The position numbers and the translations under genes are program-made. The notes under the pieces are model-generated. The model had not been told where the DNA came from and did not search any database. It saw only the letters and a program-made list of their open reading frames with translations. From Guillardia theta CCMP2712 (Eukaryota > Protista > Cryptophyta), in the NCBI RefSeq assembly GCF_000315625.1, contig NW_005434524.1:99871-135677 (forward strand): a stretch of DNA of 35,807 nucleotides. Direction: 5' to 3'. Positions 15,427 to 31,105 of this stretch are shown in pieces (within the stretch, counting starts at the first letter, position 1; each line of letters starts with the position of its first letter).

Positions 15427-18400
15427 TCACAGCCAGGTACCACACAACAGTCCCCACGGATCTTCTAGCCAACGGGAAGGTGCTACGGTCGTGCGAGTAC
15501 CGTCGGAGAGGGACTTGCAGTCGTCGGCTCGCTGGAGCTCGCCTGCCGTAGGCCTCCTCCCCCAAGAGACCGGTACTTCTCTTGTATTGCGTCGTAACGC
15601 GCGCGAGCATGGCATAGATGAGGTCAGGGAGGTCGGGAGTGACCTGCCAAGGCCCCACCTCCCAGCTATCACGTTCGGAGAGGTGGAGGAAACCAATGGG
15701 GGGATCCTGTCCAGCCTCGGGCGGAGCTTGTGGGGAGGGGAGCGAGGATCGATCTCGCAATTCTTGCTACTGCGCACTCGATCGGTCATGGGCTTCATCG
15801 GGCTTCGATCGCTGTGGACTTTGGTACTGAAGAAGGTCGTCCGACTGGGGCAGATAGCGGACCGATGCCTGCAGGAGAGCGACACTGTTTGACATGCTTT
15901 TCTCACTTCACTCTACAAGTTGAAAGGGTTCTCAACGATGGTATCAGCATTTGACAACCTCCCCCTCTCTCCCCCCCTCTCTCTCCTCCTCCTTTCACGC
16001 CGACAGCCCTCTCATGAAAGTAACGCTGTACAAGTCCTCCGTCTCCTCCCTCATGAAGGTGCACTCTACACTCGATCCCACATGTCCCAGCAGCAGCTCA
16101 GCAAGCTGAGCGAGGCGAAACCCGGCGACCGAGGAGCCGTCAACTGCCACGATGTAGTCCCCCACTGCAACTTTGCGGCATGCGGCAGCTGGGCTCTTGT
16201 CGACGACTGACTTGACCCGAAGGAGCTCCTTGCTGTCGACTCGCTCAAAGTAAGCTCCTATCCCTACCTTGCTCTTCCACGACCTCTGAGAGCTGCTGAT
16301 GGAACGAGACGGAGAGGTCGACAGTGACAGGTCCTCCCGTACCTGAGCCCATCCCCCCTCGCTGCTTTCGCGCCCTTCCGCGCTGCTCCTGCGCCCTCCA
16401 GCTCGCCTGCCTGAGAAGCTCAAGGAGAAGGAGGAGGAAGGCGAGCAGGAGACTGAAACTCCCACACTCCCGTCTTCCTCCCCGCCCCCCTCTCCTTCCC
16501 GTACAGCAGCACACGGCACCTCCGATTCCCCTGCCTCCGAGCTTGCGCGTTCCTGAGTTGTATCACACTTGCTGGGCTCCTGACCAGCCGCTGCTGCTGA
16601 ACCCCACGCCCTTGTCTCCTTCGATACCAGCTCCCCTGCTGTACCAACAGCAGCACCTCCTCCTCCACCTTCACACACAGCTTCAGCAGCTTCCGGCGAC
16701 TCCACCGCTGCTCCCTCCTCCTTGCTGCCTCCTCCTCCTGGATCCGACGGGCCTCTCGTCGTCCTCTCACAAGCTCCAGCTGTAGCGGATGCAGCAGCAG
16801 CTGCTGTAGCAGCAGCAGCAGACGTTGACTGGTCGGGTGCGATCGCGTCCTTGCTGGGCAGCTGGCTGACCGGGGCCGATGGGAGCTGAGAGTGGGCAGA
16901 TGGAGGATGGGCAGGGGCAGCAGAGGCAGAGGCTAGAGCACAAGCAGCAGCAGCAGCAGCAGCTGGAGCAGGAGCAGCAGCTTGTGGAGCTGCAGCTGGA
17001 GCAGGAGAGGCAGTAGAAGCTTTGCTACCCGTAGCAGCAGCGGGGAAACAAGCTGAGACTGGCGGCCTGACGTCTGGAGCCTCTTGCTTGATGATCGGAG
17101 CTGCGGGAGGCTGCGGTCCTGTCGTCGTCTCGTTCGATGACTTGAGAGCAGGAGCAGCAGTGGGATGAAGAAGAGATGCCGACGCTGCCGAGGTAGCAGC
17201 AGATGCCACAGCTGTCGTGGTGGATGGACCTGAAGCAGCAGCAGGCGCTGGCGCCTTCACTGTAGTCGCTTCCTTGCTGGGCTCCTGGCCGGCTGCTGCT
17301 GCTGGGCCCGGCACCCTTGTCGTATCCGCACAAGGTTCAGACCCTCCTGCTGCAGTCCCGGATGCACCACCAGCCCCAGCCCCAGCCCCAGCAGCAGGTG
17401 CTGGTGACCTGTCGGCCGTTGCCTCCTGCCTGCTTGCCGGGGCTGCGGGTAGCTGCGGGCTCATAACCTTGGAAGAAGTAGCAGCAGCGTCACCAACTTC
17501 ACCTCCTCCTCCTCCTTCACCCACAGCTTCAACAGCTTCCGGCGACTCCACCGCTGCTCCCTCCTCCTTGCTGCCTCCTCCTCCTGGATCCGACGGGCCT
17601 CTCGTCGTCCTCTCACAAGCTCCAGCAGCTGCTGCTGTAGCAGCAGCAGCAGACGTTGACTGGTCGGGTGCGATCGCGTCCTTGCTGGGCAGCTGGCTGA
17701 CCGGGGCCGATGGGAGCTGAGAGTGGGCAGATGGAGGATGGGCAGGGGCAGCAGAGGCCGAGGCTAGAGCACAAGGAGCAGTAGCTGCTGCTGCTGGAGC
17801 TGGAGCTTGTGGAGCTGGAGCAGTAGCTGGAGCTGGAGCAGCAGCTTGTGGAGCTGGAGCAGGAGCTGGAGCTGGAGCAGGAGAGGCAGTAGAAGCTTTG
17901 CTACCCGTAGCAGCAGCGGTCAAGCAAGCTGAGACTGGCGGCCTGACGTCTGGAGCCTCTTGCTTGATGATCGGAGCTGCGGGAGGCTGCGGGCCTGAAG
18001 CAGCAGAAGGTGGAGAAGGTGCTGGAGCGAGAGGTGCAGTCGCTTCCTTGCTGGGCTCCTGGCTGGCTGTTGCTTGAGAGATTTGCTGCCTTGATGTGGA
18101 CCCCACAAATGCTGCAGTCCCTGATGCACCAGCACCAGCACCAGCAGCTCTTGCAGCACCAGCACCAGCACCAGCACCAGCACCTCCAGCAGCAGCTCCA
18201 GCAGCAGTTCCAGCTGCTGCTGCTTCAGCAGCTGCTGGCGACTTGACGGGAGCTCTGCCGATGTCAGCAGTGGTAGCAGCCGATGCGTCAGCAGTGGCAA
18301 CAGGTGGGGCTTCAGCTGTCATAGTAGCAGCATCACGTGCTGGAGGCTTGACGGCTGCAGTCGCATCCTTCCTGAGCTGCTGGCCGGCTGGACCTGTGGA

Positions 18401-21400
18401 GACTTGCGACTTCTTCGCCCCCGAAGAAGCAGCAGCGGGAGCAGCAGCAGCTGAGAGCTCAGATGTCGTCGGAGCTCCTGCACTTGCGATCTCCTTTGCC
18501 TTTGCTGTCGTTGCAGCGGTTGGAATGGCAGCTGGCGGCGGTTTGGCGACTGACGTCGAGCTGCTGCTGGGCTGGCTGGTCGGAGCTGCAGGTGCAGCTA
18601 CAGCCGTTGAAGATGCAGCTACAGCCGTTGAAGCTGCTGGTGCAGATCCTTTCGGCTTGACGGCTGTCGCCACGTCTTGGACTGTCGAAACTGCTGGGCC
18701 GGAACTGAGTCTAATCATCTCTTGCGCATCCGTAGAACAAGCAGCAGCAGCAGCAGGCGCTAGGGGCGACATGACAGCTGCTGCAGCCTTGCTGGGCTCC
18801 TGGCCAGCCACTGCTGGAGAGATTTGCTGTTTCACTGCCGACTTGGCACAAGGTGCTGTCGCTCCTGCTGCAGTTTGTGGTGCACCAGCTCCAGCTGCTG
18901 CTGCTGCTTCAGCAGGTGCTGGCGACTTGAAGGGCGCTGCCGCCTGCTTGCCTGCCGGGGCTGCGGGAAGCTGCGGGCTCATAACCTTGGAAGCAGCAAC
19001 GACCGATGAGGCTGAAACTGTCACCTGCTGGCTTGCGAGGGCAACGGGGAGCTGCAATTTAACTACCACAGGCTGAGAAGGAACAGCGATAGCAGCAGGA
19101 CCTGGAGCAGCAGCTGGAGCTGGAGCTGGAGCTGGAGCTGGAGCAGCGGCTGGAGCTGGAGCTGGAGCTGGAGCTGGAGCTGGAGCGGCCGCTGAAGCTT
19201 GAGCTTGAGCAGCAGCTGGAGCAGCCACTGGAGCTGGAGCAGCCGCTAGAGCAGGAGCAGCAGATTGACCTGGAGCAGCAGCTGGAGCAGCAGCAGCTGG
19301 AGCGGCCGCTGGAGCTGGAGCTTGAGCTTGAGCAGCAGGAGCAGCAGCTGGAGCTGGGGAGGCAGCTGGAGCTGGAGCTGGAGCAGCCGCTAGAGCAGGA
19401 GCAGTAGCAGGACCTGGAGCTGGAGCAGGAGCTGGAGCTTGAGCTTGAACAGCAAGAGCAGCCGCTGCAGCAGGAGCAGCAGCAGTTGCTGGAGCAGCCG
19501 CTGGAGCTTGAGCTTGAATAGCAGGAGCAGCAGCTGGAGCTGAGGAAGCAGCAGGAGCAGCAGCAGGAGCTGGAGCTTGAATAGCAGGAGCAGCAGCTGG
19601 AGCAGGAGCTGGAGCTGGAGCAGGAGCTGGAGCTGGAGCAGCCGCTAGAGCAGGAGCAGTAGCAGGAGCTGGAGCAGGAGCAGGAGCTGAAGCAGCAGCT
19701 GGAGCTGGAGCAGGAGCTGGAGCTGGAGCAGGAGCTGGAGCTGAAGCAGGAGCTGCAGCTGAAGCAGGAGCTGGAGCAGCAGCTGAAGCAGGAGCTGGAG
19801 CAGCAGCTTGAACAGCAGGAGCAGCAGCTGGAGCAGCAGCTGAAGCTTGAGCAGCAAGAGCTGGAGCGGCCGCTGGAGCTTGAGCTTGAGCAGCAGCTGT
19901 AGTGGCCACTGGAGCTGGAGCAGCCGCTAGAGCTGGAGCAGCAGCTGGAGCAGCAGCAGCTGAAGCGGCCGCTGGAGCGGCCGCTGGAGCTGGAGCTGGA
20001 GCTGGAGCTGGAGCTGGAGCTGGAGCTGGAGCAGCAGCAGCTGGAGCAGCCGCTGGAGCAGAAGCTGGTGCAGCAGCAGCTGGAGCAGCCGCTGGAGCAG
20101 AAGCTGGTGCAGCAGCAGCTGGAGCAGCAGCAGCTGAAGCGGCCGCTGGCGCAGCAGCAGCATCTGGAGCAGCAGCAGGAGCAGCAGCAGCAGCAGGAGC
20201 AGCAGCTGGAGCAGCAGCAGGAGCAGCCGCTAGAGCTGAGGAAGCAGCTGGATCTGGAGCTGGAGCTGGAGCTGGAGCAGCCGCTGGAGCAGCAGCTGGA
20301 GCAGCAGCAGCTGAAGCGGCCGCTGGAGCAGCAGCAGCAGCAGCAGGAGCAGCAGCTGGAGCAGCCGCTAGAGCTGGGGCAGCGGCTGGAGCTGGAGCAG
20401 CCGCTAGAGCTGAGGAAGCAGCTGGATCTGGAGCTGGAGCTGGAGCTGGAGCTGGAGCTGGAGCAGCCGCTGGAGCTGGAGCTGGAGCTGGAGCAGCAGC
20501 TGGAGCTGGAGCTGGAGCAGCAGCAGGAGCTTGAGCAGCAGCAGCAGTAGCTGGAGCAGCAGCAGCTGGAGCTGGAGCAGAAGCAGCAGCTGGAGCAGGA
20601 GCAGCCGCTGGAGCAGAAGCTGGATTAGCAGCAGCTGGAGCAGCAACTGGAGCAGGAGCAGGAGCAGAAGCTGGAGCAGGAGCAGCAACTGGAGCTGAAG
20701 CAGTGTTCCCCTGTGCCTGGGCGGCTGGAACGGCATTGTTTCGGGCCGGGGTTGGCTGGCTTGCTGTCGACTTGACCGTCGGGGGAGGCAGAGACGCTGA
20801 AGCTGCTGCACGACAAGTTTCAGCAAGTGTAGAGCCCTTGACTTTCGTCCCTCCCTTGCTGGGCTCCCCGCCGGCCGGGGCTGGGGGGAGCTGAGGCCTC
20901 GTCGTTACCGCGGCTGTAGCGGCGGATGAAGCTGCTGCTGGTGTTGCTGCTGGAGTATGTGGATCTGCTGCTGGAGTATGTGGAGCTGCTGCTGGAGTAG
21001 GAGCAGCAGCAGGTGAAGCTGCTGGAGTAGGAGCAGGAGGAGCAGGTGAAGGTGCAGCTGGAGTAGTAGCAGGAGGAGCACAGGTAGCTGACGCCATGGG
21101 TTTGACCGCTGCTGTCGCATCCTCACTGGCCGGAGCTGCTGGGGCCCGCGGGGTCGTAGTGGGAGGAGACTCTCGAGCGACTCTGGTCGACGTGTCCGTT
21201 TCACCTGCTGTTGCATCCGTTACAAGCCCAGACCTCCTCCTCCCTTGCTCTCCTCCCGCAGCATCTGGCCGCCTGACAGCTGACTCGCCACGACTCTTCA
21301 CGTCCGTCGCTCGTCCATGCTCCCCTCGCTCCGCTGTTCCAGCTTCTTCCTCCCCTTCGGTCCTTCCTAGGGTCATCACTACGTCCCCCCTTTTCTGCTC

Positions 21401-22666
21401 TCCGCTTTCATCAGCTGTGGGGCCCGAACCCAGCACCATAACTTGTCCTGCACACCGAGTCTGCTCCTGCTCCTGCTTCACCATCCCTTCCCTGCCACTT
21501 CCTCGAGTTACTATCGAGGACATAGCGTCAATCTTCTCCTTCAACTTCAGCTTAGCCTTTGCAACATACCCATCGCCCCGCTCCACAGCTTCTCCCTCCT
21601 GCTCGCCGACTGCCCCTCCCTCATGCGCTCCCAAAGACGGCGAAGCACCTCCTCCCTCCTCACGAGAAGCTCCAGCAGTCGAGGGAGCATCTTCATCCTC
21701 TTGAAAGAGGTCAGGGCTGATCAACGTCAGGCTCCTTCTCACTTCCATCTCACTAGAAGCCTCGTGCGGATACATCCACTTCGTTCGAGCTTTCGGTGTG
21801 ATCACTCTACAAGGTTCCAGTTCGTGCAGGTTGTCAGTGAGTCCGTGTTGTCGTCTGCTCGCTTCCAGCGCCATGGTGAGACTCTCTGCTCCTGTTCTCA
21901 GGATTCCGATTCTCCTCCCCCCGCTCATCGGACTCTCAGAAACGCTCAGCTCCTGCCGCTCACTCAAGGGGCTTGCAAGGGGCACGCTCGAGATCTCAAG
22001 TCCTGCTAGTTGATGTGACTCAAGTCTTCCCAGTGGATGGGAGACATGAAAGTCTTTGATCTCAACAGACTTGGTGTTGTCATGCTTCTTGTGAGTGCTC
22101 AACCACGGTCTGCTTGTTCTCTGCAGACTTCCCCGAGCTTGACACTGTTGTTCCCATTCATCGAAGCTTTGCCGCAACCTCCCTCTATCTCTGCGATGTA
22201 TCATCCGGCTCATACACCTTCTCGTGTATCGTTTGCTATGACAGTAGTCGGCAAGTCGCCAGAAAGGTTTTGCGATCGTGTTTCTCCTCAGCAGAGTCGT
22301 GGAAGCAGCAACGAGCCTGCTGAACAGGGTCTGGCGGAACGTCTCATAGATCTGCTGTTGGCCTTTGAGCAGGATCTCCTGCCTGTTCAAGTTTTCTTTC
22401 ATTTTGTGCTCGGTCTCATCGTTTGATCTTCGCTTCTCAACAATCTCTTTCTGGATCGACAGCATACCGCAAAAACGCACATGTCAGACTAAGTCGTGCT
22501 TCCAGCAAAGACCTCTCCTCACCTGCAGCTGCTTCTTCCTCCCCTCCAGCTTCCCGAGCTCACCATGAGCTCTCGCTAAGATCTTCTCAGCCTCTTCGCA
22601 GGCCTCCCGCGCCTCCTCCTCCGCCCTTCTCCTCCTCCTCCGCGCCTCCTCCAGCCCTCCCAGCAT
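15427..22666 (-). CDS. Very large (>2300 aa) Ala/Pro-rich protein with N-terminal coiled coil and a PDZ domain near the C-terminus
   Basis: Exon 22666-22523 (MLGGLEEARR...GRKKQLQ), intron 22522-22451, then a ~6.45 kb open exon ending in a PDZ domain (VGIGAYFER...LRVKSVVDKSPAAACRKVAVGDYIVAVDGSSVAGFRLAQLAELLLGHVGSSVECTFMR, ~16010-16270). Two short introns plausibly join it to the frame HRSAICPSR...GLLCGTWL-stop at 15427; otherwise it stops at 15995. Confidence 0.75.
16655..17995 (-). repeat. Internal ~460-480 bp duplication within the PDZ gene (copies ~16655-17117 and ~17510-17995)
   Basis: GPQPPAAPIIKQEAPDVRPPVSAC...GSKASTASPAPA...HPPSAHSQLPSAPVSQLPSKDAIAPDQSTS...GACERTTRGPSDPGGGGSKEEGAAVESPEA occurs twice with near-identical DNA. 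Confidence 0.9.
19085..20700 (-). repeat. Coding microsatellite-like array encoding ~540 aa of Ala/Pro repeats
   Basis: GCT/CCA/CCT codon repeats with higher-order units (e.g. APAPDPAASSALAAAPA twice, APALAAAPA several times), stop-free in the gene frame. Confidence 0.9.
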
Positions 22667-25640: not shown

Positions 25641-25674
25641 TTCTACCTTCACTGATACAGAGGAGAGGAGGAGG

Positions 25675-25805
25675 AGAGGGAGAGGGAGAGGGAGAGGGAG
25701 AGGGAGAGGGAGAGGGAGAGGGAGAGGGAGAGGGAGAGGGAGAGGGAGAGGGAGAGGGAGAGGGAGAGGGAGAGGGAGAGGAGGGGAGAGGGAGAGGGAG
25801 AGGGA
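25675..25805. repeat. (GAGGGA)n hexamer microsatellite
   Basis: Directly visible near-perfect hexamer run. Confidence 0.95.
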
Positions 25806-26121
25806 GGAGGAGGATCATTAGGGGCAGGAAAAGGAGGAGCAGGAGCAGAAGTAGTGAATAGTAGTTGCAGGAAGAGCAGGTATAGTAGGAGGAACATAAA
25901 TATTTAGGAACAGTAGCAGAAATAGCAGGTGAAGCAGGAGGAGCAGGAGTAGTAGAAAGAGAACCAAGGGAAGGATGAAAAATATGAAAGGAAGTCAGGG
26001 TAGGCAAAGGTGTAAGCAAGGAGGGAAGAGAAAAATGCAAGTGAATGACGGAAATCAGGCGCGATTATTGATTGATTAATCATACATATGGTGTTATGGA
26101 TTGTGCTTGTTGTAATTGTTG

Positions 26122-26606: not shown

Positions 26607-28571
26607 ATGTCGGAGTCGCCGTCAGAATCTGCAGACAAGCCCATGAGCGCCGATTCCAAGAGGGAGTGGAACAGGATGCGGGCAGCGAGAAAGAAGATGC
26701 TGAGGAACGGACAGAAGCAGCTCTTGTCCCGACTGGACGAAGCTCTGCCCGACGACTCCAGGCGGCTGGTCGGGAAGGGGCAGGGGAAGAGGTCGTTGGG
26801 ATCGGAGGGGAGGTCACTGTTGAACATCCTGGAGGACACGGTGGACTATCTGAGGAGGTGCAAGAAGGAGGAGGAGAATCGAGCGAGAGCGATGCGCGAC
26901 AGCGAGGGGGGGAGCCCAGCAACGACGTCAGTGTGCGAGGTAATGAGGCCCGGGCTCCTGTCCAGCAGGTCGCTCGTTGCGTTCGAGGTCGAGCTGTCGA
27001 GCCTGAAGGTGGCTGCCGTCAGCACGCTGGTGGAGGAGCTCTACACAAACTCAGAGCTCGGGAGCCCGTTGGGAAGGAGCTTGAAGGAACTGGTCCACCC
27101 TGACAACGGTCGGGTGATACAGCAGATCCTGATCCAGTCCCAGAGCCCGTCGGCACCGCCGGCCGGCCCCAAGGTCACTGTGCGGTTCTGCACAGGCTTC
27201 AGCTCCATGGACCCGTGCAGCATCTTGACCTGCGACGTTCGGGTGACGCCTTGCACCGCGAACAAGCGCTTCCTCCTCGTGGGAGAAGTTCAGGAGGCGA
27301 AGAAGCCGCCAAGCATGAAGGCATGCGAAGAAGTCATGGTGTCGAACTCGCCAACGCTGGTGAGAGCGGAGGACGTGGTCGAGGTAGAGCTCCCCGACGG
27401 GAAGATCACCGGGCTGCGGGGGAGGACGAAGGACTGGTTCCGGCACGCTCCCTTCAAGATGATCACGGGCCAGTACTTGACTATGTTGCTCCACCCTCTC
27501 GACCAGGAGTCTTTCATCCTCTACCTCGCGGAGCTCAACCGGCTCAAGGACGCCATCGCTCCCAGTGCCCTCAACGTTCGCGTCATATGCTTCCACCCGG
27601 TCGACTTCGTGCCCCGTTCGCACGACGATCGAGCTGTCGAGACCATCCGGCAGATGACGATTGTGGACCCGCTGCGGTGTAAGCTGCAGGCGCAGCGGGT
27701 GTACAGGAAGAACGGCATGCTGCATGCCAGCCTGGCGTTTGTGGACGTTATGAACGAGGAGGAGATGAATCAGGAGCTGAAGGGGAGGGGCAGGGGAGGC
27801 ATCGCCACGCTGGAAGACGTGACAGGGCCTGCGGATGTTTGGATGGGGATCTACCACTACGACGCGCAGGCGTCAAACGTGTCGCTGAGCGAGTTGCAGC
27901 GAGAGATGCTGAGGTGGGACGACGACAAGCACGAGACCAAGAGCAAGGAGATGTCCTTCTTCGGGAGGATCCGGCAGAAAGTTCTGTCAGCGTCCATGGA
28001 GCTACAAGCAGCGATGACAGAGTCCGCAGCTTCCTTCATGCACTTCCACTTCGGGCTGGGGTCATGCCTGGTCAAGGAAGAGGGGGCAGAGGAGGAGCAA
28101 GAGGAAGGAGCAGGCGGAGGAGGAGCATGCAGAGTGATGGACACGTTCCGTGCTCACTACCGCCTGAAGCTCCCTGCGTTCCTGGGAGGGTTCGAGACGA
28201 ACTGGCGATGCGTCTTGGAGATTCCCATCGACGGGAGCGCAGTCAGCCTGAACAGCGTTGAGAAGACTCAGTCGATCAGAATACCGGTGCGTTACCGCCA
28301 TGGCACCAGCTTCATCGCCTTCATGTGCCGCAAGGACAGCCAGGGCAACCACATGGTCTACCACTCGAGGATCGTGCTCTTCGACAGCAACGGAGGAGGA
28401 GTTACGGCTACGGGGCAGATCATTTCGCCTCATACCGGACTTCCCAGCATCTTCTGCATGCGGGCCAAGAAGATCGGGGCGGTCGACCCGTCGCTGACGG
28501 AACCGAAGAGCGAGACGTTCGTCGAGCGATGCCAGGGCTGGGGTGCCTCGAACAGCATGACCAACTCATGA
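26607..28571 (+). CDS. Intronless atypical bHLH-PAS-PAS transcription factor with a C-terminal beta-rich domain (654 aa)
   Basis: Basic region/helix 1 KREWNRMRAARKKMLRNGQKQLLSRLDEALP; helix 2 RSLLNILEDTVDYLR. PAS-like repeat 1 LVAFEVELSSLKVAAVS...LGRSLKELVHPDNGRVIQQIL and repeat 2 VVEVELPDGKITGL...ITGQYLTMLLHPLDQESF both carry the G-x-S/Y-L-x-x-L-V/L-H-P-x-D/N PAS signature. Long ORF with GC-ending codons. Confidence 0.8.
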   Translation: MSESPSESADKPMSADSKREWNRMRAARKKMLRNGQKQLLSRLDEALPDDSRRLVGKGQGKRSLGSEGRSLLNILEDTVDYLRRCKKEEENRARAMRDSEGGSPATTSVCEVMRPGLLSSRSLVAFEVELSSLKVAAVSTLVEELYTNSELGSPLGRSLKELVHPDNGRVIQQILIQSQSPSAPPAGPKVTVRFCTGFSSMDPCSILTCDVRVTPCTANKRFLLVGEVQEAKKPPSMKACEEVMVSNSPTLVRAEDVVEVELPDGKITGLRGRTKDWFRHAPFKMITGQYLTMLLHPLDQESFILYLAELNRLKDAIAPSALNVRVICFHPVDFVPRSHDDRAVETIRQMTIVDPLRCKLQAQRVYRKNGMLHASLAFVDVMNEEEMNQELKGRGRGGIATLEDVTGPADVWMGIYHYDAQASNVSLSELQREMLRWDDDKHETKSKEMSFFGRIRQKVLSASMELQAAMTESAASFMHFHFGLGSCLVKEEGAEEEQEEGAGGGGACRVMDTFRAHYRLKLPAFLGGFETNWRCVLEIPIDGSAVSLNSVEKTQSIRIPVRYRHGTSFIAFMCRKDSQGNHMVYHSRIVLFDSNGGGVTATGQIISPHTGLPSIFCMRAKKIGAVDPSLTEPKSETFVERCQGWGASNSMTNS

Positions 28572-28591: not shown

Positions 28592-28665
28592 CATCATCAT
28601 CATCGTCATCGTCATCATCATCATCATCGTCGTCATCATCATCATCATCGTCATCGTCATCATCA
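28592..28665. repeat. (CAT/CGT)n trinucleotide microsatellite just 3' of the bHLH-PAS gene
   Basis: Directly visible; gives the poly-His, poly-Asp and poly-Met spurious ORFs. Confidence 0.9.
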
Positions 28666-29105
28666 CCCCCCATCCAACTTTCCTCCTGCTCCTGCTCCTC
28701 ATCACCATCCTCATCCCTTTCCTTTTCTTCATCTTGATCCTCCCCCCCCTCCCGCTCTTGTTGCTGCTCTCTCTGCCCTTTTCCCATCTTACGTCTCGTC
28801 GCGTGTCGTTTGGATCTCAAGGGAATGCAAGAGGAGCAACAATCTCATCCGTTCAAAAGCAAGTAAACAAGTTTTGTTGAACTCCTCCTCCTCCTCCTCC
28901 TGCCTCTCCTCCTCCTCCTCCTCCTGCCTCTCCTCCTCCTCCTCCTCCTCCTCCTCCTCCTCCTCCTCCTCCTCCTCCTCCTCCTCCTCCTCTACTCGAC
29001 TCCTCCCTTGCCATCTCTCTACCTCCTCATTCCCACCCTCTTTGTCACGAAGCATCTTTTTCCTCCTCCGCATCTTCTCTCCTCCCCCTCCATCTCCCAC
29101 ACGTG

Positions 29106-29492
29106 TCAGCTTGCATCGTCGAGCAGTGAAGTCTTATATGTCTCCAGCTGCTCTATCAGCTGCCCTATCAGCTGCTCCTCCTCCGTCAGCGGATTGACCA
29201 CGTGATGCTACCCCCTCCTCCTGCCTCCCCTCCTCTCCCCTCCTGCCAAACTTACACCCCCTCTTCTTCCGCCCCCCACCTGCGCCAGCCCCCTCCTCCT
29301 CCTCCTCCTCCTCCTCCTCCTCCTCCCTCACCTCCTCTGTCTCCTTCTCTCCCATCCTCGTTTGCTCGATCATCCCCTGTAGCGCTGCTTTCTTGCAAAC
29401 TTCCGTGCTGCCATGGTCGAGCGAGAGGAGAGGTTTCTTCATCCAGTCCTTGAGCAAGAGATCATCTGAAGCCTCCTCCTCCTCCCTCCTCC

Positions 29493-29558
<66 letters not shown>

Positions 29559-31105
29559 CCTCTCTCCCCTGCTCCTCCTCCCTCTTCCTCCCTCTCCGTC
29601 TCCCTCCTGCTCCTCCTGCCTCTCCTCCCCCTCTTGCTCCTCCTTGCAAGAGCACCTGAAGCTTGTCGCTGAACTCCCTATTAGGAGTTTCTGACTTGTA
29701 CTCAGCGCTTGCGTCCTGCCATTCTGCTTCCTGTCCTGCGAGTGAGCTAGGAAAGGAAAATTGAGAAGAAGCAACGGGGACAAGAACGTGCGCGAACAAG
29801 AGAGAGAAAATGGAGGCAGCAGGCAGCAGAGAGGAAGAAGGAGGGAGGAAGGAGGAGGGAGCAGAGAGAAAGGAAGAGGAGCGAGGAAGAGGGGGAGACG
29901 TAGCTGTACCTCATGCAAATACTCCGACGATCCTCCGGCATCGTTGAAAGTCACTCCCTTGGACTCTGACGGCTGTGGGTAACTCCCGTCAGCAGACGAG
30001 CGAGGAGGAGGAGGAGGAGGAGGAGGAGGAGGAGGAGGAGGAGGAAGGGAGGGAGGGAAGGGAGAGGAGGGCGTAAGAGAGGAAAAAGGAGAGAGGAGGG
30101 AAGAGGAAGAGGAGGAGGGAGGGCGGGAGGGTAGAGGAGGGAGTGGAGCGTCGCAGGACNNNNNNNNNNNNNNNNNNNNNNNNNNNNNNNNNNNNNNNNN
30201 NNNNNNNNNNNNNNNNNNNNNNNNNNNNNNNNNNNNNNNNNNNNNNNNNNNNNNNNNNNNAAGTGGTTGAAGAATTCTTCCTTGATCCACTCCTCCACCT
30301 ACAATTTGAATGACTCCCTCCCTCTCCCTCTCCTACTGCCTCTGCCTCTGCCTCTCCCCTCCCTGCTGCCCTCCCTCCCTTTCCTTGCCTCTCTCCCTCT
30401 CCCTCTCCCTCTCCCTCTCCCTCTCCCTCCCTCCCCCCTCTTCCTCCCCCTCCTCCTCCTCGCTCTCAGACTGGACATGGAAACCAACATTGACTTCGAC
30501 GAAGCCGTACTTCCTCGTTCGCCCAGCTGTCCGGCACTGAGCCACGTTGATACGAAGGACGTGGCTGCAAGAGAAAAGCGAGTCACGTCCCCTCTTGAGC
30601 TTCTTCCGAACTTTAAGCACGCCTGGCAGGAGCACGATGACGTCAGCGGGCGTTCAACCCGATTCCCTCCTCACTGTTGAAAGGATGGACTTCGTCGTAC
30701 CACGAGACTCTTCTGTCCTTGCAAGGCTGCAAACAAACACGATGAATCGAGTATTTTTCTCCCTCTCCCTCTCCCTCTCCCTCTCCCTCTCCTTCCTCCC
30801 CCTCTCTCGCTCTATCCATCTTCTCCCCCCACCCCCAGTTCCCTCCTCCATCACTGTCACACGACGTTCTTCTCCTCCCACCTGAGCATGGGTCTTGAGC
30901 ACAGTCTGGCCTGACAGCAGCTTCTTGCCCTGCCAGGCCATCTGCGCTTGGATCAGGTATGGGGTCTGGTTTTACAGCAGCATCAGGTTGTCATGAAGGA
31001 GATCGCCACAAGGGTCCTAGCAACCTGCATGCAGTCATCGAGCTGTTCTACACGGATGATGATGGTGATGTTGAAGTATCTCTTCGCCTGCTCCCCCGCC
31101 CTCAT
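29106..31105 (-). CDS. NT-C2 (EEIG1/EHBP1 N-terminal C2) domain protein, spanning an assembly gap
   Basis: Spliced frame MRAGEQAKRYFNITIIIRVEQLDDCMQ-TPYLIQAQMAWQGKKLLSGQTVLKTHAQ-DRRVSWYDEVHPFN-SVLKVRKKLKRG...HVLRINVAQCRTAGRTRKYGFVEVNVGFH-VEEWIKEEFFNH follows the NT-C2 strand pattern (F.l.I..l, W..gk...G.T, v.W.e, L.i.V, lG.v.iNl). Exons after the gap end LIEQLETYKTSLLDDAS-TGA. Both ends are uncertain. Confidence 0.6.
30160..30260. other. Assembly gap (run of 101 N)
   Basis: Directly visible; falls inside the NT-C2 gene. Confidence 1.

Follow-up and report, generated by a model that had tools for sequence, protein, structure and literature searches.

In animals, basic helix-loop-helix (bHLH)-PAS proteins serve as sensors for the clock, for hypoxia and for xenobiotics, and the animal factors (ARNT, CLOCK/BMAL1, AhR, HIF-alpha, NPAS) share the domain order bHLH, PAS-A, PAS-B. 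Among microalgae, the diatom protein RITMO1/bHLH1a and the Pfam-detectable genes of the cryptophyte Guillardia theta likewise have a bHLH followed by PAS; a few G. theta or cryptophyte bHLH-PAS genes have already been noted (PMC6600994, PMC5470732, PMC10739334). A quite different group, the intracellular lipid-binding proteins (iLBPs: fatty acid-binding protein, FABP; CRABP; CRBP; myelin P2; bile-acid-binding protein), together with UnaG, Oplophorus luciferase/NanoLuc and SAHS, forms a barrel of ten antiparallel strands, with helices inserted between strands A and B. The iLBP fold is generally regarded as an animal innovation. A bHLH-PAS protein that carries a barrel of this kind is not known to us and was not found in the full-text literature searched. 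The locus described here lies in a window of 35,807 nucleotides from G. theta CCMP2712 (the whole stretch of DNA that was analysed; contig C150, NW_005434524.1, positions 99871-135677; the genome searched comprises 87 Mb in 669 contigs). At 26607-28571 on the forward strand the window encodes a protein that a first-pass annotation, made from the sequence alone, had read as a bHLH-PAS-PAS factor fused to a possible FABP- or lipocalin-like barrel. The open reading frame (ORF), motifs and domain layout described there are real. It is somewhat probable that the gene encodes a divergent, cryptophyte-expanded, transcription-factor-like protein of the bHLH-PAS type, with a bHLH-like module, two PAS-like modules and a predicted FABP-type barrel, which would act as a single-chain ligand-responsive regulator. 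The main features are the following.

26607-28571, forward strand: complete intronless coding sequence, 654 amino acids plus stop (from the ORF list and Hanusia phi collinearity)
26655-26876, forward strand: divergent bHLH-like module, residues ~17-90 (from family alignment A3 and profile matches in the PDB)
26943-27311, forward strand: PAS-like copy A, residues ~113-235, with VHPDNGR at ~163-169 (from the RepA hidden Markov model, profile A4 and the ARNT alignment)
27354-27752, forward strand: PAS-like copy B, residues ~250-382, with LHPLDQE at ~295-301 (from the RepA and RepB hidden Markov models)
27819-28490, forward strand: C-terminal FABP/iLBP-like beta-barrel unit, residues ~405-628, predicted (from family conservation, AlphaFold2 and structural matches)

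The ORF is uninterrupted from ATG to stop. A transcript-derived protein from the Hanusia phi EukProt set (P0001, 652 amino acids) is 78% identical and collinear with it from the shared initiator Met to the C-terminus. This collinearity shows the 654-residue ORF to be a genuine coding sequence with a fixed start codon and without introns, under purifying selection over its whole length. The exact 654-residue sequence was not found in a collection of 15 billion proteins. The NCBI model, P0002, has 144 amino acids and spans residues 511-654 only. It occupies positions 28137-28571 of the window and begins at the internal Met511, within a barrel strand; it is devoid of the bHLH-like module, of both PAS copies and of half of the barrel, and needs extension to 26607. 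Three findings are specific to this locus: the arrangement with two PAS copies, the orthologue in Hanusia and the correction of the gene model.

Single-sequence searches give little. With the window protein alone as query there is no relevant match in Pfam or NCBIfam, even at E ≤ 10, and the protein is below the Pfam gathering thresholds for HLH and PAS. Four paralogues, which match no Pfam family at E ≤ 10, and the Hanusia orthologue likewise lack HLH or PAS matches. Word-indexed homologue searches returned essentially the Hanusia orthologue only, with no bridge to annotated bHLH-PAS proteins. A lone phmmer match in the PDB, 3ck6 (E 0.019, residues 294-390), did not recur in profile searches and was treated as chance. 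When 1.84 billion representatives were searched exhaustively with a profile, 96 relatives were recovered at E ≤ 1e-3; most of them align to residues ~20-200, and the family profiles were built from the 96. When full-length family members are scanned, weak Pfam bHLH matches appear in 3 of 98, and a Pfam PAS match at E ≤ 0.01 in none of the 98. In a language-model feature search, all ten top rows were bHLH-PAS families (scores of 0.89-0.93), for example ARNT, NPAS4, PER and AhR, with a diatom HLH cluster. The similarity to bHLH and PAS domains exceeds chance at the profile level only.

The bHLH-like module has a basic stretch at residues 17-33, a first helix that runs to LP48, a long loop and a second helix at 71-86. 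The same order of elements is found in the 85 sequences of alignment A3: a Lys/Arg-rich stretch, a helix ending in LDxLLP, the long loop and a second amphipathic helix. The A3 profile matches the bHLH of CLOCK best among PDB sequences (E = 1.6e-4), followed by USF, USF2, PHO4 and BMAL1, and the basic region with helix 1, and helix 2, are in register with the PDB bHLH domains. The N-terminal bHLH of the first-pass annotation is borne out by these matches. When the 85 segments were scanned singly, Pfam HLH was matched weakly by 15, bHLH_ILI by seven and bHLH_PER by one, and no unrelated family by more than two. A near-invariant motif, GAGxRSxGxxGRS (residues 58-70, positions 26778-26816), occupies the loop across the 85 members. 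Classical bHLH domains contain nothing equivalent to it; the Ser/Arg pattern could be a phosphorylation or interaction site. Judged by profile, the module is therefore of the bHLH type, although its basic region is non-canonical and its loop unusual.

Binding of DNA by this module is plausible. In the alignment with CLOCK, the conserved bHLH Arg corresponds to the near-invariant R33, and the Lys/Arg-rich stretch stands directly before helix 1. Both observations argue against the view that the N-terminal helices are only a dimerization or coiled-coil element of a cytosolic signalling protein that does not bind DNA. That view draws on the missing canonical E-box Glu, on the failure of the query to reach the Pfam HLH threshold and on the fact that the Pfam-detectable HLH loci of the genome are other genes. 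Animal class I bHLH-PAS proteins, e.g. AhR, have atypical basic regions and yet bind DNA, and a purely cytosolic role is considered very unlikely.

The two PAS-like copies show in the alignments with relatives, in which segments 100-240 and 240-400 of the query fall on one common region. A hidden Markov model (HMM) seeded on the first segment, RepA, matches the query at residues 113-186 (1.5e-20) and again at 253-317 (3.6e-14), and does likewise in Hanusia, while the RepB model matches query residues 255-360 at 1.6e-30. Profile A4, from 57 sequences, was compared with the PDB; 19 of the 20 matches listed are ARNT/ARNT2 (both PAS-A and PAS-B), PER and BMAL1, with E-values that start at ~1e-3. 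At the centre of the alignment stands G..L...VHP.D, for which the query holds VHPDN in one copy and LHPLD in the other. It corresponds to the H(P)(D/E)D motif described as characteristic of the PAS domains in bHLH-PAS proteins (bioRxiv 10.1101/2023.04.23.537977). Scans of the 57 segments gave 13 weak matches to Pfam families of the PAS clan, spread over six PAS families. With a combined bHLH and PAS profile, A7, positions 58-197 are collinear with ARNT ~42-186, from helix 2 through the linker into PAS-A (E = 3e-4), and all 13 PDB matches are ARNT, ARNT2 or CLOCK. The two repeats and the animal order claimed by the first-pass annotation are upheld by the profiles. Its segment boundaries agree with them as well: HLH-like at 25-87, PAS-like at ~113-235 and ~250-382, and the C-terminal unit at ~398-637. 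A duplicated module, PAS-like by profile, that follows the bHLH-like module in animal order is the reading adopted here.

Placed in a maximum-likelihood tree of the modules, the two copies each join the corresponding Hanusia copy (100/100) and are not sisters. Recent tandem duplication was therefore rejected as the origin of PAS-B, and the second PAS predates the Guillardia-Hanusia split. Copy B has a long branch and is placed with the PAS of a different subfamily (95/87). The PAS-B of the window protein is not an orthologue of animal PAS-B, as only one PAS occurs in most members of the family.

Compared with the animal bHLH-PAS factors, which are the best PDB profile matches for both modules, the window protein has the same domain order and the H-P-(D/E)-D motif in both PAS copies. 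It differs in falling under the Pfam thresholds, in the long HLH loop with GxGxRSxGxxGRS, in having Lys for the E-box Glu and in its C-terminus, which is predicted to be a structured FABP-like barrel and not a disordered transactivation region. The profiles indicate that it is distantly related to these factors. Because the Pfam thresholds were failed and the canonical E-box Glu is absent, it is filed as a divergent cryptophyte branch of the bHLH-PAS proteins and assigned to no named animal class.

The C-terminal unit of ~220 residues, which begins at about residue 410, is recovered as such in the paralogue alignment A6, with an HMM envelope of 398-637. Its parts are as follows.

27834-27875, forward strand: opening strand of the predicted barrel, motif G(V/I)(Y/F)x(F/Y)D..S, residues 410-423 (from alignment and model strand)
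27885-28034, forward strand: enlarged helical lid predicted between strands A and B, residues ~427-476 (from DSSP on the model)
28071-28127, forward strand: acidic/Gly-rich low-complexity insert in the predicted B-C hairpin, residues ~489-507 (from alignment A6; lower confidence in the model)
28146-28481, forward strand: most conserved core of the predicted barrel, residues 514-625 (from the Cdom HMM envelope)

The motifs quoted in the first-pass annotation are where it had placed them: DVWMGIYHYDAQASN at residues 410-424, LSELQREML at 427-435, FFGRIRQKVLSA at 451-462 and FCMRAKKIG at 616-624. At first only the core, 514-625, seemed conserved, and the regions that had appeared as gaps in paralogues then proved to be homologous too. 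The family counterpart of DVWMGIYHYDAQAS is the motif G(V/I)(Y/F)x(F/Y)D(E/D)..S...PW(D/E), whose residues G414, D419 and S423 in the opening strand are conserved in 76-95% of rows, and that of SFMHFHFGL is (M/L)xQxHxxF. The core has the signature HxRLKLPxxLGxFxTxW, in which W533 is invariant in A6, and R519, P523 and G527 are near-invariant across A6 and invariant in A5. Conserved barrel positions are H481, H517, R519, K521, W533, H586 and K/R622. The low-complexity insert at 489-507 is found in A6 only in the window gene and the Hanusia orthologue.

No sequence method that was used detects the resemblance of the opening strand to the FABP sequence motif, so this part of the first-pass annotation does not stand, and the likeness is at the level of the fold. 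There is no match to PF00061 (lipocalin/FABP) at E ≤ 1 in 25 family members, no calycin Pfam family was matched, and PF00061 is also without a match in a six-frame search of the whole G. theta genome. Given the latter, the family barrels may be the only detectable FABP-fold proteins in this genome, detectable by predicted structure only. Profile matches to the nsp3 papain-like protease (E ~0.7) and to DCC-interacting protein 13-alpha (E ~0.4) are at the level of chance.

AlphaFold2 (AF2) was run on residues 400-654 with a family alignment of 25 rows. The mean predicted local distance difference test score (pLDDT) is 75.4 and the predicted template modelling score (pTM) 0.73; the five models range from 72.6 to 75.4 in pLDDT, and blocks of strands reach 87-94. 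The model has a short strand at 414-418 (residues 15-19 in the numbering of the model), helices at 427-439, 451-459 and 464-476, and then eight long or medium strands up to residue 624. The lid helices were assigned by DSSP as H28-40, H52-60 and H65-77 in model numbering, with a pLDDT of 48-57 in the middle of the lid.

The model was compared with 48,161 representative chains by VIA structural alignment, a search independent of Foldseek, for which the stated best Z without a true match is 7-8. Ten chains have Z ≥ 8 and all ten have the FABP fold: nanoKAZ (Z 10.4); human IFABP (Z 9.6); CRBP-IV (Z 9.6, 130 of 133 residues, 3.3 Å); Drosophila FABP (Z 9.6, 125 of 128 residues); and LBP-8, SAHS, UnaG, a bile-acid-binding protein, Manduca FABP and As-p18 (Z 8.3-9.5, UnaG at 9.2). 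Other ten-strand calycin barrels are lower, with the HEV zinc-binding protein 6nu9 at Z 7.9, the G. theta CPES bilin lyase 4tq2 at Z 6.6 and nitrobindin/THAP4 at Z 5.8-6.0 (3ia8, Z 6.0). A second look, over the top 1000 Foldseek chains, gave 84 chains with Z ≥ 8, and the best 50 of these 84 are all of the iLBP type or FABP-like (NanoLuc, UnaG). The best match overall is the locust FABP 1ftp (Z 10.7, 2.9 Å, 130 of 133 residues), and IFABP, CRBP-IV and CRABP2 are at Z 9.6-10.2. Foldseek itself gives a probability of 0.97-0.99 and a TM-score of 0.51-0.61 (by target) to CRABP2 and IFABP. Its top rows by E-value, Whirly, BF3112 and factor-H-binding protein, were rejected, their TM-scores being only 0.12-0.24 by query. 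A reading as a lipocalin, with eight strands and a C-terminal helix, was rejected too: the lipocalins compared (alpha-1-microglobulin, tear lipocalin and lipocalin 15) have Z 4.4-5.4, and the model has no long C-terminal helix.

A Z above 10 against a background of 7-8, near-complete coverage of most targets and a single fold in the top rows led to acceptance of the FABP-like lidded barrel, which is the best current model. The check by AlphaFold, Foldseek and structural alignment that the first-pass annotation had called for thus recovered a barrel of the FABP type, matched at full length to iLBP/FABP structures at Z 9-10.7. It is highly improbable that the barrel is an artefact of a shallow alignment and that the region has another fold, e.g. 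a divergent PAS-like or a novel alpha/beta domain. This would agree with the small number of rows, many of them paralogues, and with weak E-values in Foldseek. A language-model search with residues 400-640 also returned unnamed clusters and a few weak PAS rows (0.86), and an ESM-Atlas shape search gave weak bacterial barrels and weak calycin-type rows with TM-scores of only 0.39-0.47 by query. The pTM, the pLDDT of the strands and the agreement of the five models speak against an artefact, as do the Z values of 10-10.7, above background and with full-length coverage of many independent FABP-fold structures. In addition, hhalign gave a probability of 0.07% for the C-terminal module against the family PAS profile; a third, degenerate PAS was likewise rejected by this comparison.

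The barrel as modelled resembles the iLBPs and their structural relatives in its ten antiparallel strands and in the helical insert between strands A and B. Structural alignments cover 122-147 residues, which amounts to 94-98% of carriers of ~125-140 residues and about 85% of nanoKAZ. Identity in these alignments is 6-14%, with no detectable sequence similarity. The window unit is also larger, ~220 versus ~130 residues, by a three-helix lid and the low-complexity hairpin insert, and it is fused to a transcription-factor chassis whereas the iLBPs are free-standing. Going by the model, the fold of the barrel is that of the FABPs, yet by sequence it does not belong to the iLBP family. THAP4, which joins a THAP zinc finger to a nitrobindin haem barrel, is a precedent for a DNA-binding domain and a ten-strand calycin-type barrel in one chain. 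It differs in its DNA-binding domain, in the absence of PAS and in a nitrobindin-type barrel without a helical lid, which is a weaker match than the FABPs.

The barrel may be a module for protein-protein interaction, dimerization or autoinhibition and not a sensor of small molecules; for example, it might replace PAS-B in the selection of partners. Most family members have one PAS followed by the barrel, so that the barrel sits at the position of animal PAS-B. In addition, H517, R519 and K521 alternate on one strand with the conserved hydrophobic residues L520 and L522 and may be surface-exposed, and no FABP ligand triad is recognizable. The lidded ten-strand barrels among the structural matches, however, are nearly all carriers or binders of hydrophobic ligands, and a helical lid is typical of the portal-gated cavities of iLBPs; a role confined to protein contacts is therefore regarded as unlikely.

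Another possibility concerns the nature of the ligand. The barrel might bind a tetrapyrrole, a bilin or a metal in place of a lipid, and so report pigment or haem status or act with light. Three histidines are conserved (H481, H517 and H586), and proteins with the FABP fold or related ten-strand barrels among the matches bind bilirubin (UnaG), zinc (6nu9), bilins (4tq2) and haem (nitrobindin/THAP4). Cryptophytes, moreover, produce large amounts of phycobilins. Against this, the fold matches of highest rank and coverage are lipid and retinoid carriers and not lyases or nitrobindins, and the histidines are no more than candidates for facing the cavity. A pigment or metal sensor in place of a lipid binder is judged quite unlikely; the conserved histidines and the bilin, haem and zinc binders among the fold neighbours are the reason why a tetrapyrrole or metal ligand is kept beside lipid.

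The family is abundant in G. theta. Named taxa in it are Guillardia and Hanusia, and the remaining relatives are metagenome or transcriptome proteins; close relatives include the G. theta MMETSP transcripts P0003 and P0005. Profile searches find at least 36 copies of the N-terminal module in the genome and 26 matches to the C-terminal profile, at least 15 of which are within intronless ORFs of 370-580 amino acids. None of the approximately 12 Pfam-detectable HLH loci overlaps a locus of the bHLH-PAS-barrel family, and the family is therefore a different set from the small number of bHLH-PAS genes that the literature mentions for G. theta. The microalgal proteins described previously differ from the window protein in having a single PAS, short C-terminal extensions and Pfam-detectable domains, and no barrel has been reported for them. 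The first-pass annotation had placed the PAS domain of RITMO1 N-terminal to its bHLH; the RITMO1 paper instead describes an N-terminal extension and a single PAS. Among the proteins that were fetched, the architecture bHLH-PAS-barrel is present in 15, and bHLH-PAS-PAS-barrel only in the window gene and its Hanusia orthologue. The first-pass annotation knew of no characterised protein with its architecture, and no bHLH-PAS-barrel protein was found in the literature searched. The barrel fusion is not peculiar to the window gene but is a property of the whole family, with at least 15 paralogues in this genome.

Members of the family form local clusters on contigs C55 (299989, 323515 and 326658), C14 (548-562k, 791-796k and 915-919k), C343 (7085-11425) and C20 (335k and 355k), and the C20 cluster holds a near-identical pair. 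The clustering and this pair suggest that the family expanded by tandem or segmental duplication. Variations in architecture were also observed. P0005 (774 amino acids) has two complete units of bHLH-like plus PAS-like modules in tandem and no barrel; it is either a genuine double factor or a read-through of two adjoining genes. The metagenomic proteins P0004 and P0013 and their relatives (862-991 amino acids) have an N-terminal extension of 370-400 residues before the bHLH-like module. In this subfamily the barrel opens with AHE(Y/F)MGV(Y/F), and the tree places the PAS of this subfamily with PAS-B of the window protein. Outside this subfamily, WW domains are present in two family members and a Zn2Cys6 cluster in one.

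The genomic surroundings of the window gene can be described briefly. The gene region has 53-61% G+C, with microsatellites on both flanks. Dense purine/pyrimidine repeats are found at 25662-25806, 28592-28665, 28882-28992, 29472-29644 and ~30159-30260, as (GGAGAG)n upstream, (CAT)n from 21 bases past the stop codon, and (CTC)n and (CCTCCT)n further downstream. An assembly gap, a run of N, is present near 30.16-30.26 kb of the window. Upstream, the opposite strand holds an ORF of 2161 amino acids (15995-22480, reverse strand), where the G+C content is the highest of the window (61-65%).

Several observations weigh against the interpretation of the window protein as a ligand-responsive bHLH-PAS regulator. 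Searched by itself, the query finds nothing in Pfam or NCBIfam and nothing significant in the PDB; profile E-values to bHLH and PAS domains are only 1e-3 to 1e-4; and AF2 on the full-length protein, with an alignment of two rows, gave a pLDDT of 30 and no usable PAS model. The column of the Glu that contacts the E-box holds a basic residue, Lys29 in the query, and this makes DNA binding and its target uncertain. For the barrel, profiles A5 and A6 find no calycin among PDB sequences, the model derives from a shallow alignment of 25 rows and has a lid that is partly of low confidence, and the Foldseek E-values are weak (0.02-0.06). Finally, a shared fold does not by itself show ligand binding, and to our knowledge some FABP-fold proteins, e.g. 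SAHS, have no established ligand-binding role. Thus, the domain architecture behind the term 'ligand-sensing transcription factor' of the first-pass annotation held up, but the ligand-sensing part of it stays conjectural.

The interpretation as a ligand-responsive regulator can be put in the form of a mechanism. The protein would be nuclear and transcription-factor-like. Its bHLH-like and PAS modules would mediate dimerization, perhaps with paralogues, and DNA binding; the DNA target may be a non-E-box sequence or a half-site, given the Lys at the Glu position. The barrel, predicted to have about ten strands with a lid of helices between A and B, would hold a small hydrophobic or amphipathic ligand, possibly a lipid, a retinoid-like molecule, a bilin or another tetrapyrrole. 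Occupancy by the ligand might then shift the contacts of lid and barrel with PAS, and in this way change partner choice, localization or activity.

A wider proposal, possible but doubtful, is that a whole family of single-chain transcription factors gated by ligands arose in cryptophytes, with a barrel of the FABP type that senses an endogenous lipid, retinoid-like molecule or bilin and directly controls a bHLH-PAS chassis for dimerization and DNA binding. If so, the two-protein logic of animals, where FABP or CRABP delivers a ligand to a transcription factor, would have been merged into one polypeptide, with the window member contributing a second PAS pocket, and the iLBP fold would exist outside the Metazoa, through deep homology or convergence.

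The history of bHLH-PAS proteins outside animals is poorly known and was thought to be limited to a few single-PAS genes. The cryptophyte family has been hidden from standard annotation, with at least 36 N-terminal modules in the genome and a public model of 144 amino acids at the locus described here. What is gained at once is an amended gene model for the locus, together with domain profiles by which the family can be recovered. To the bHLH-PAS class of transcription factors the family adds a predicted lidded FABP-like barrel, a type of fold unreported in this class. If the barrel binds a metabolite, it would represent one-component sensing of small molecules by a transcription factor of a eukaryote, in a lineage of algae that matters ecologically. 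In that case it would also add a data point on how the FABP fold arose and offer a compact, natural scaffold for gene switches under ligand control.

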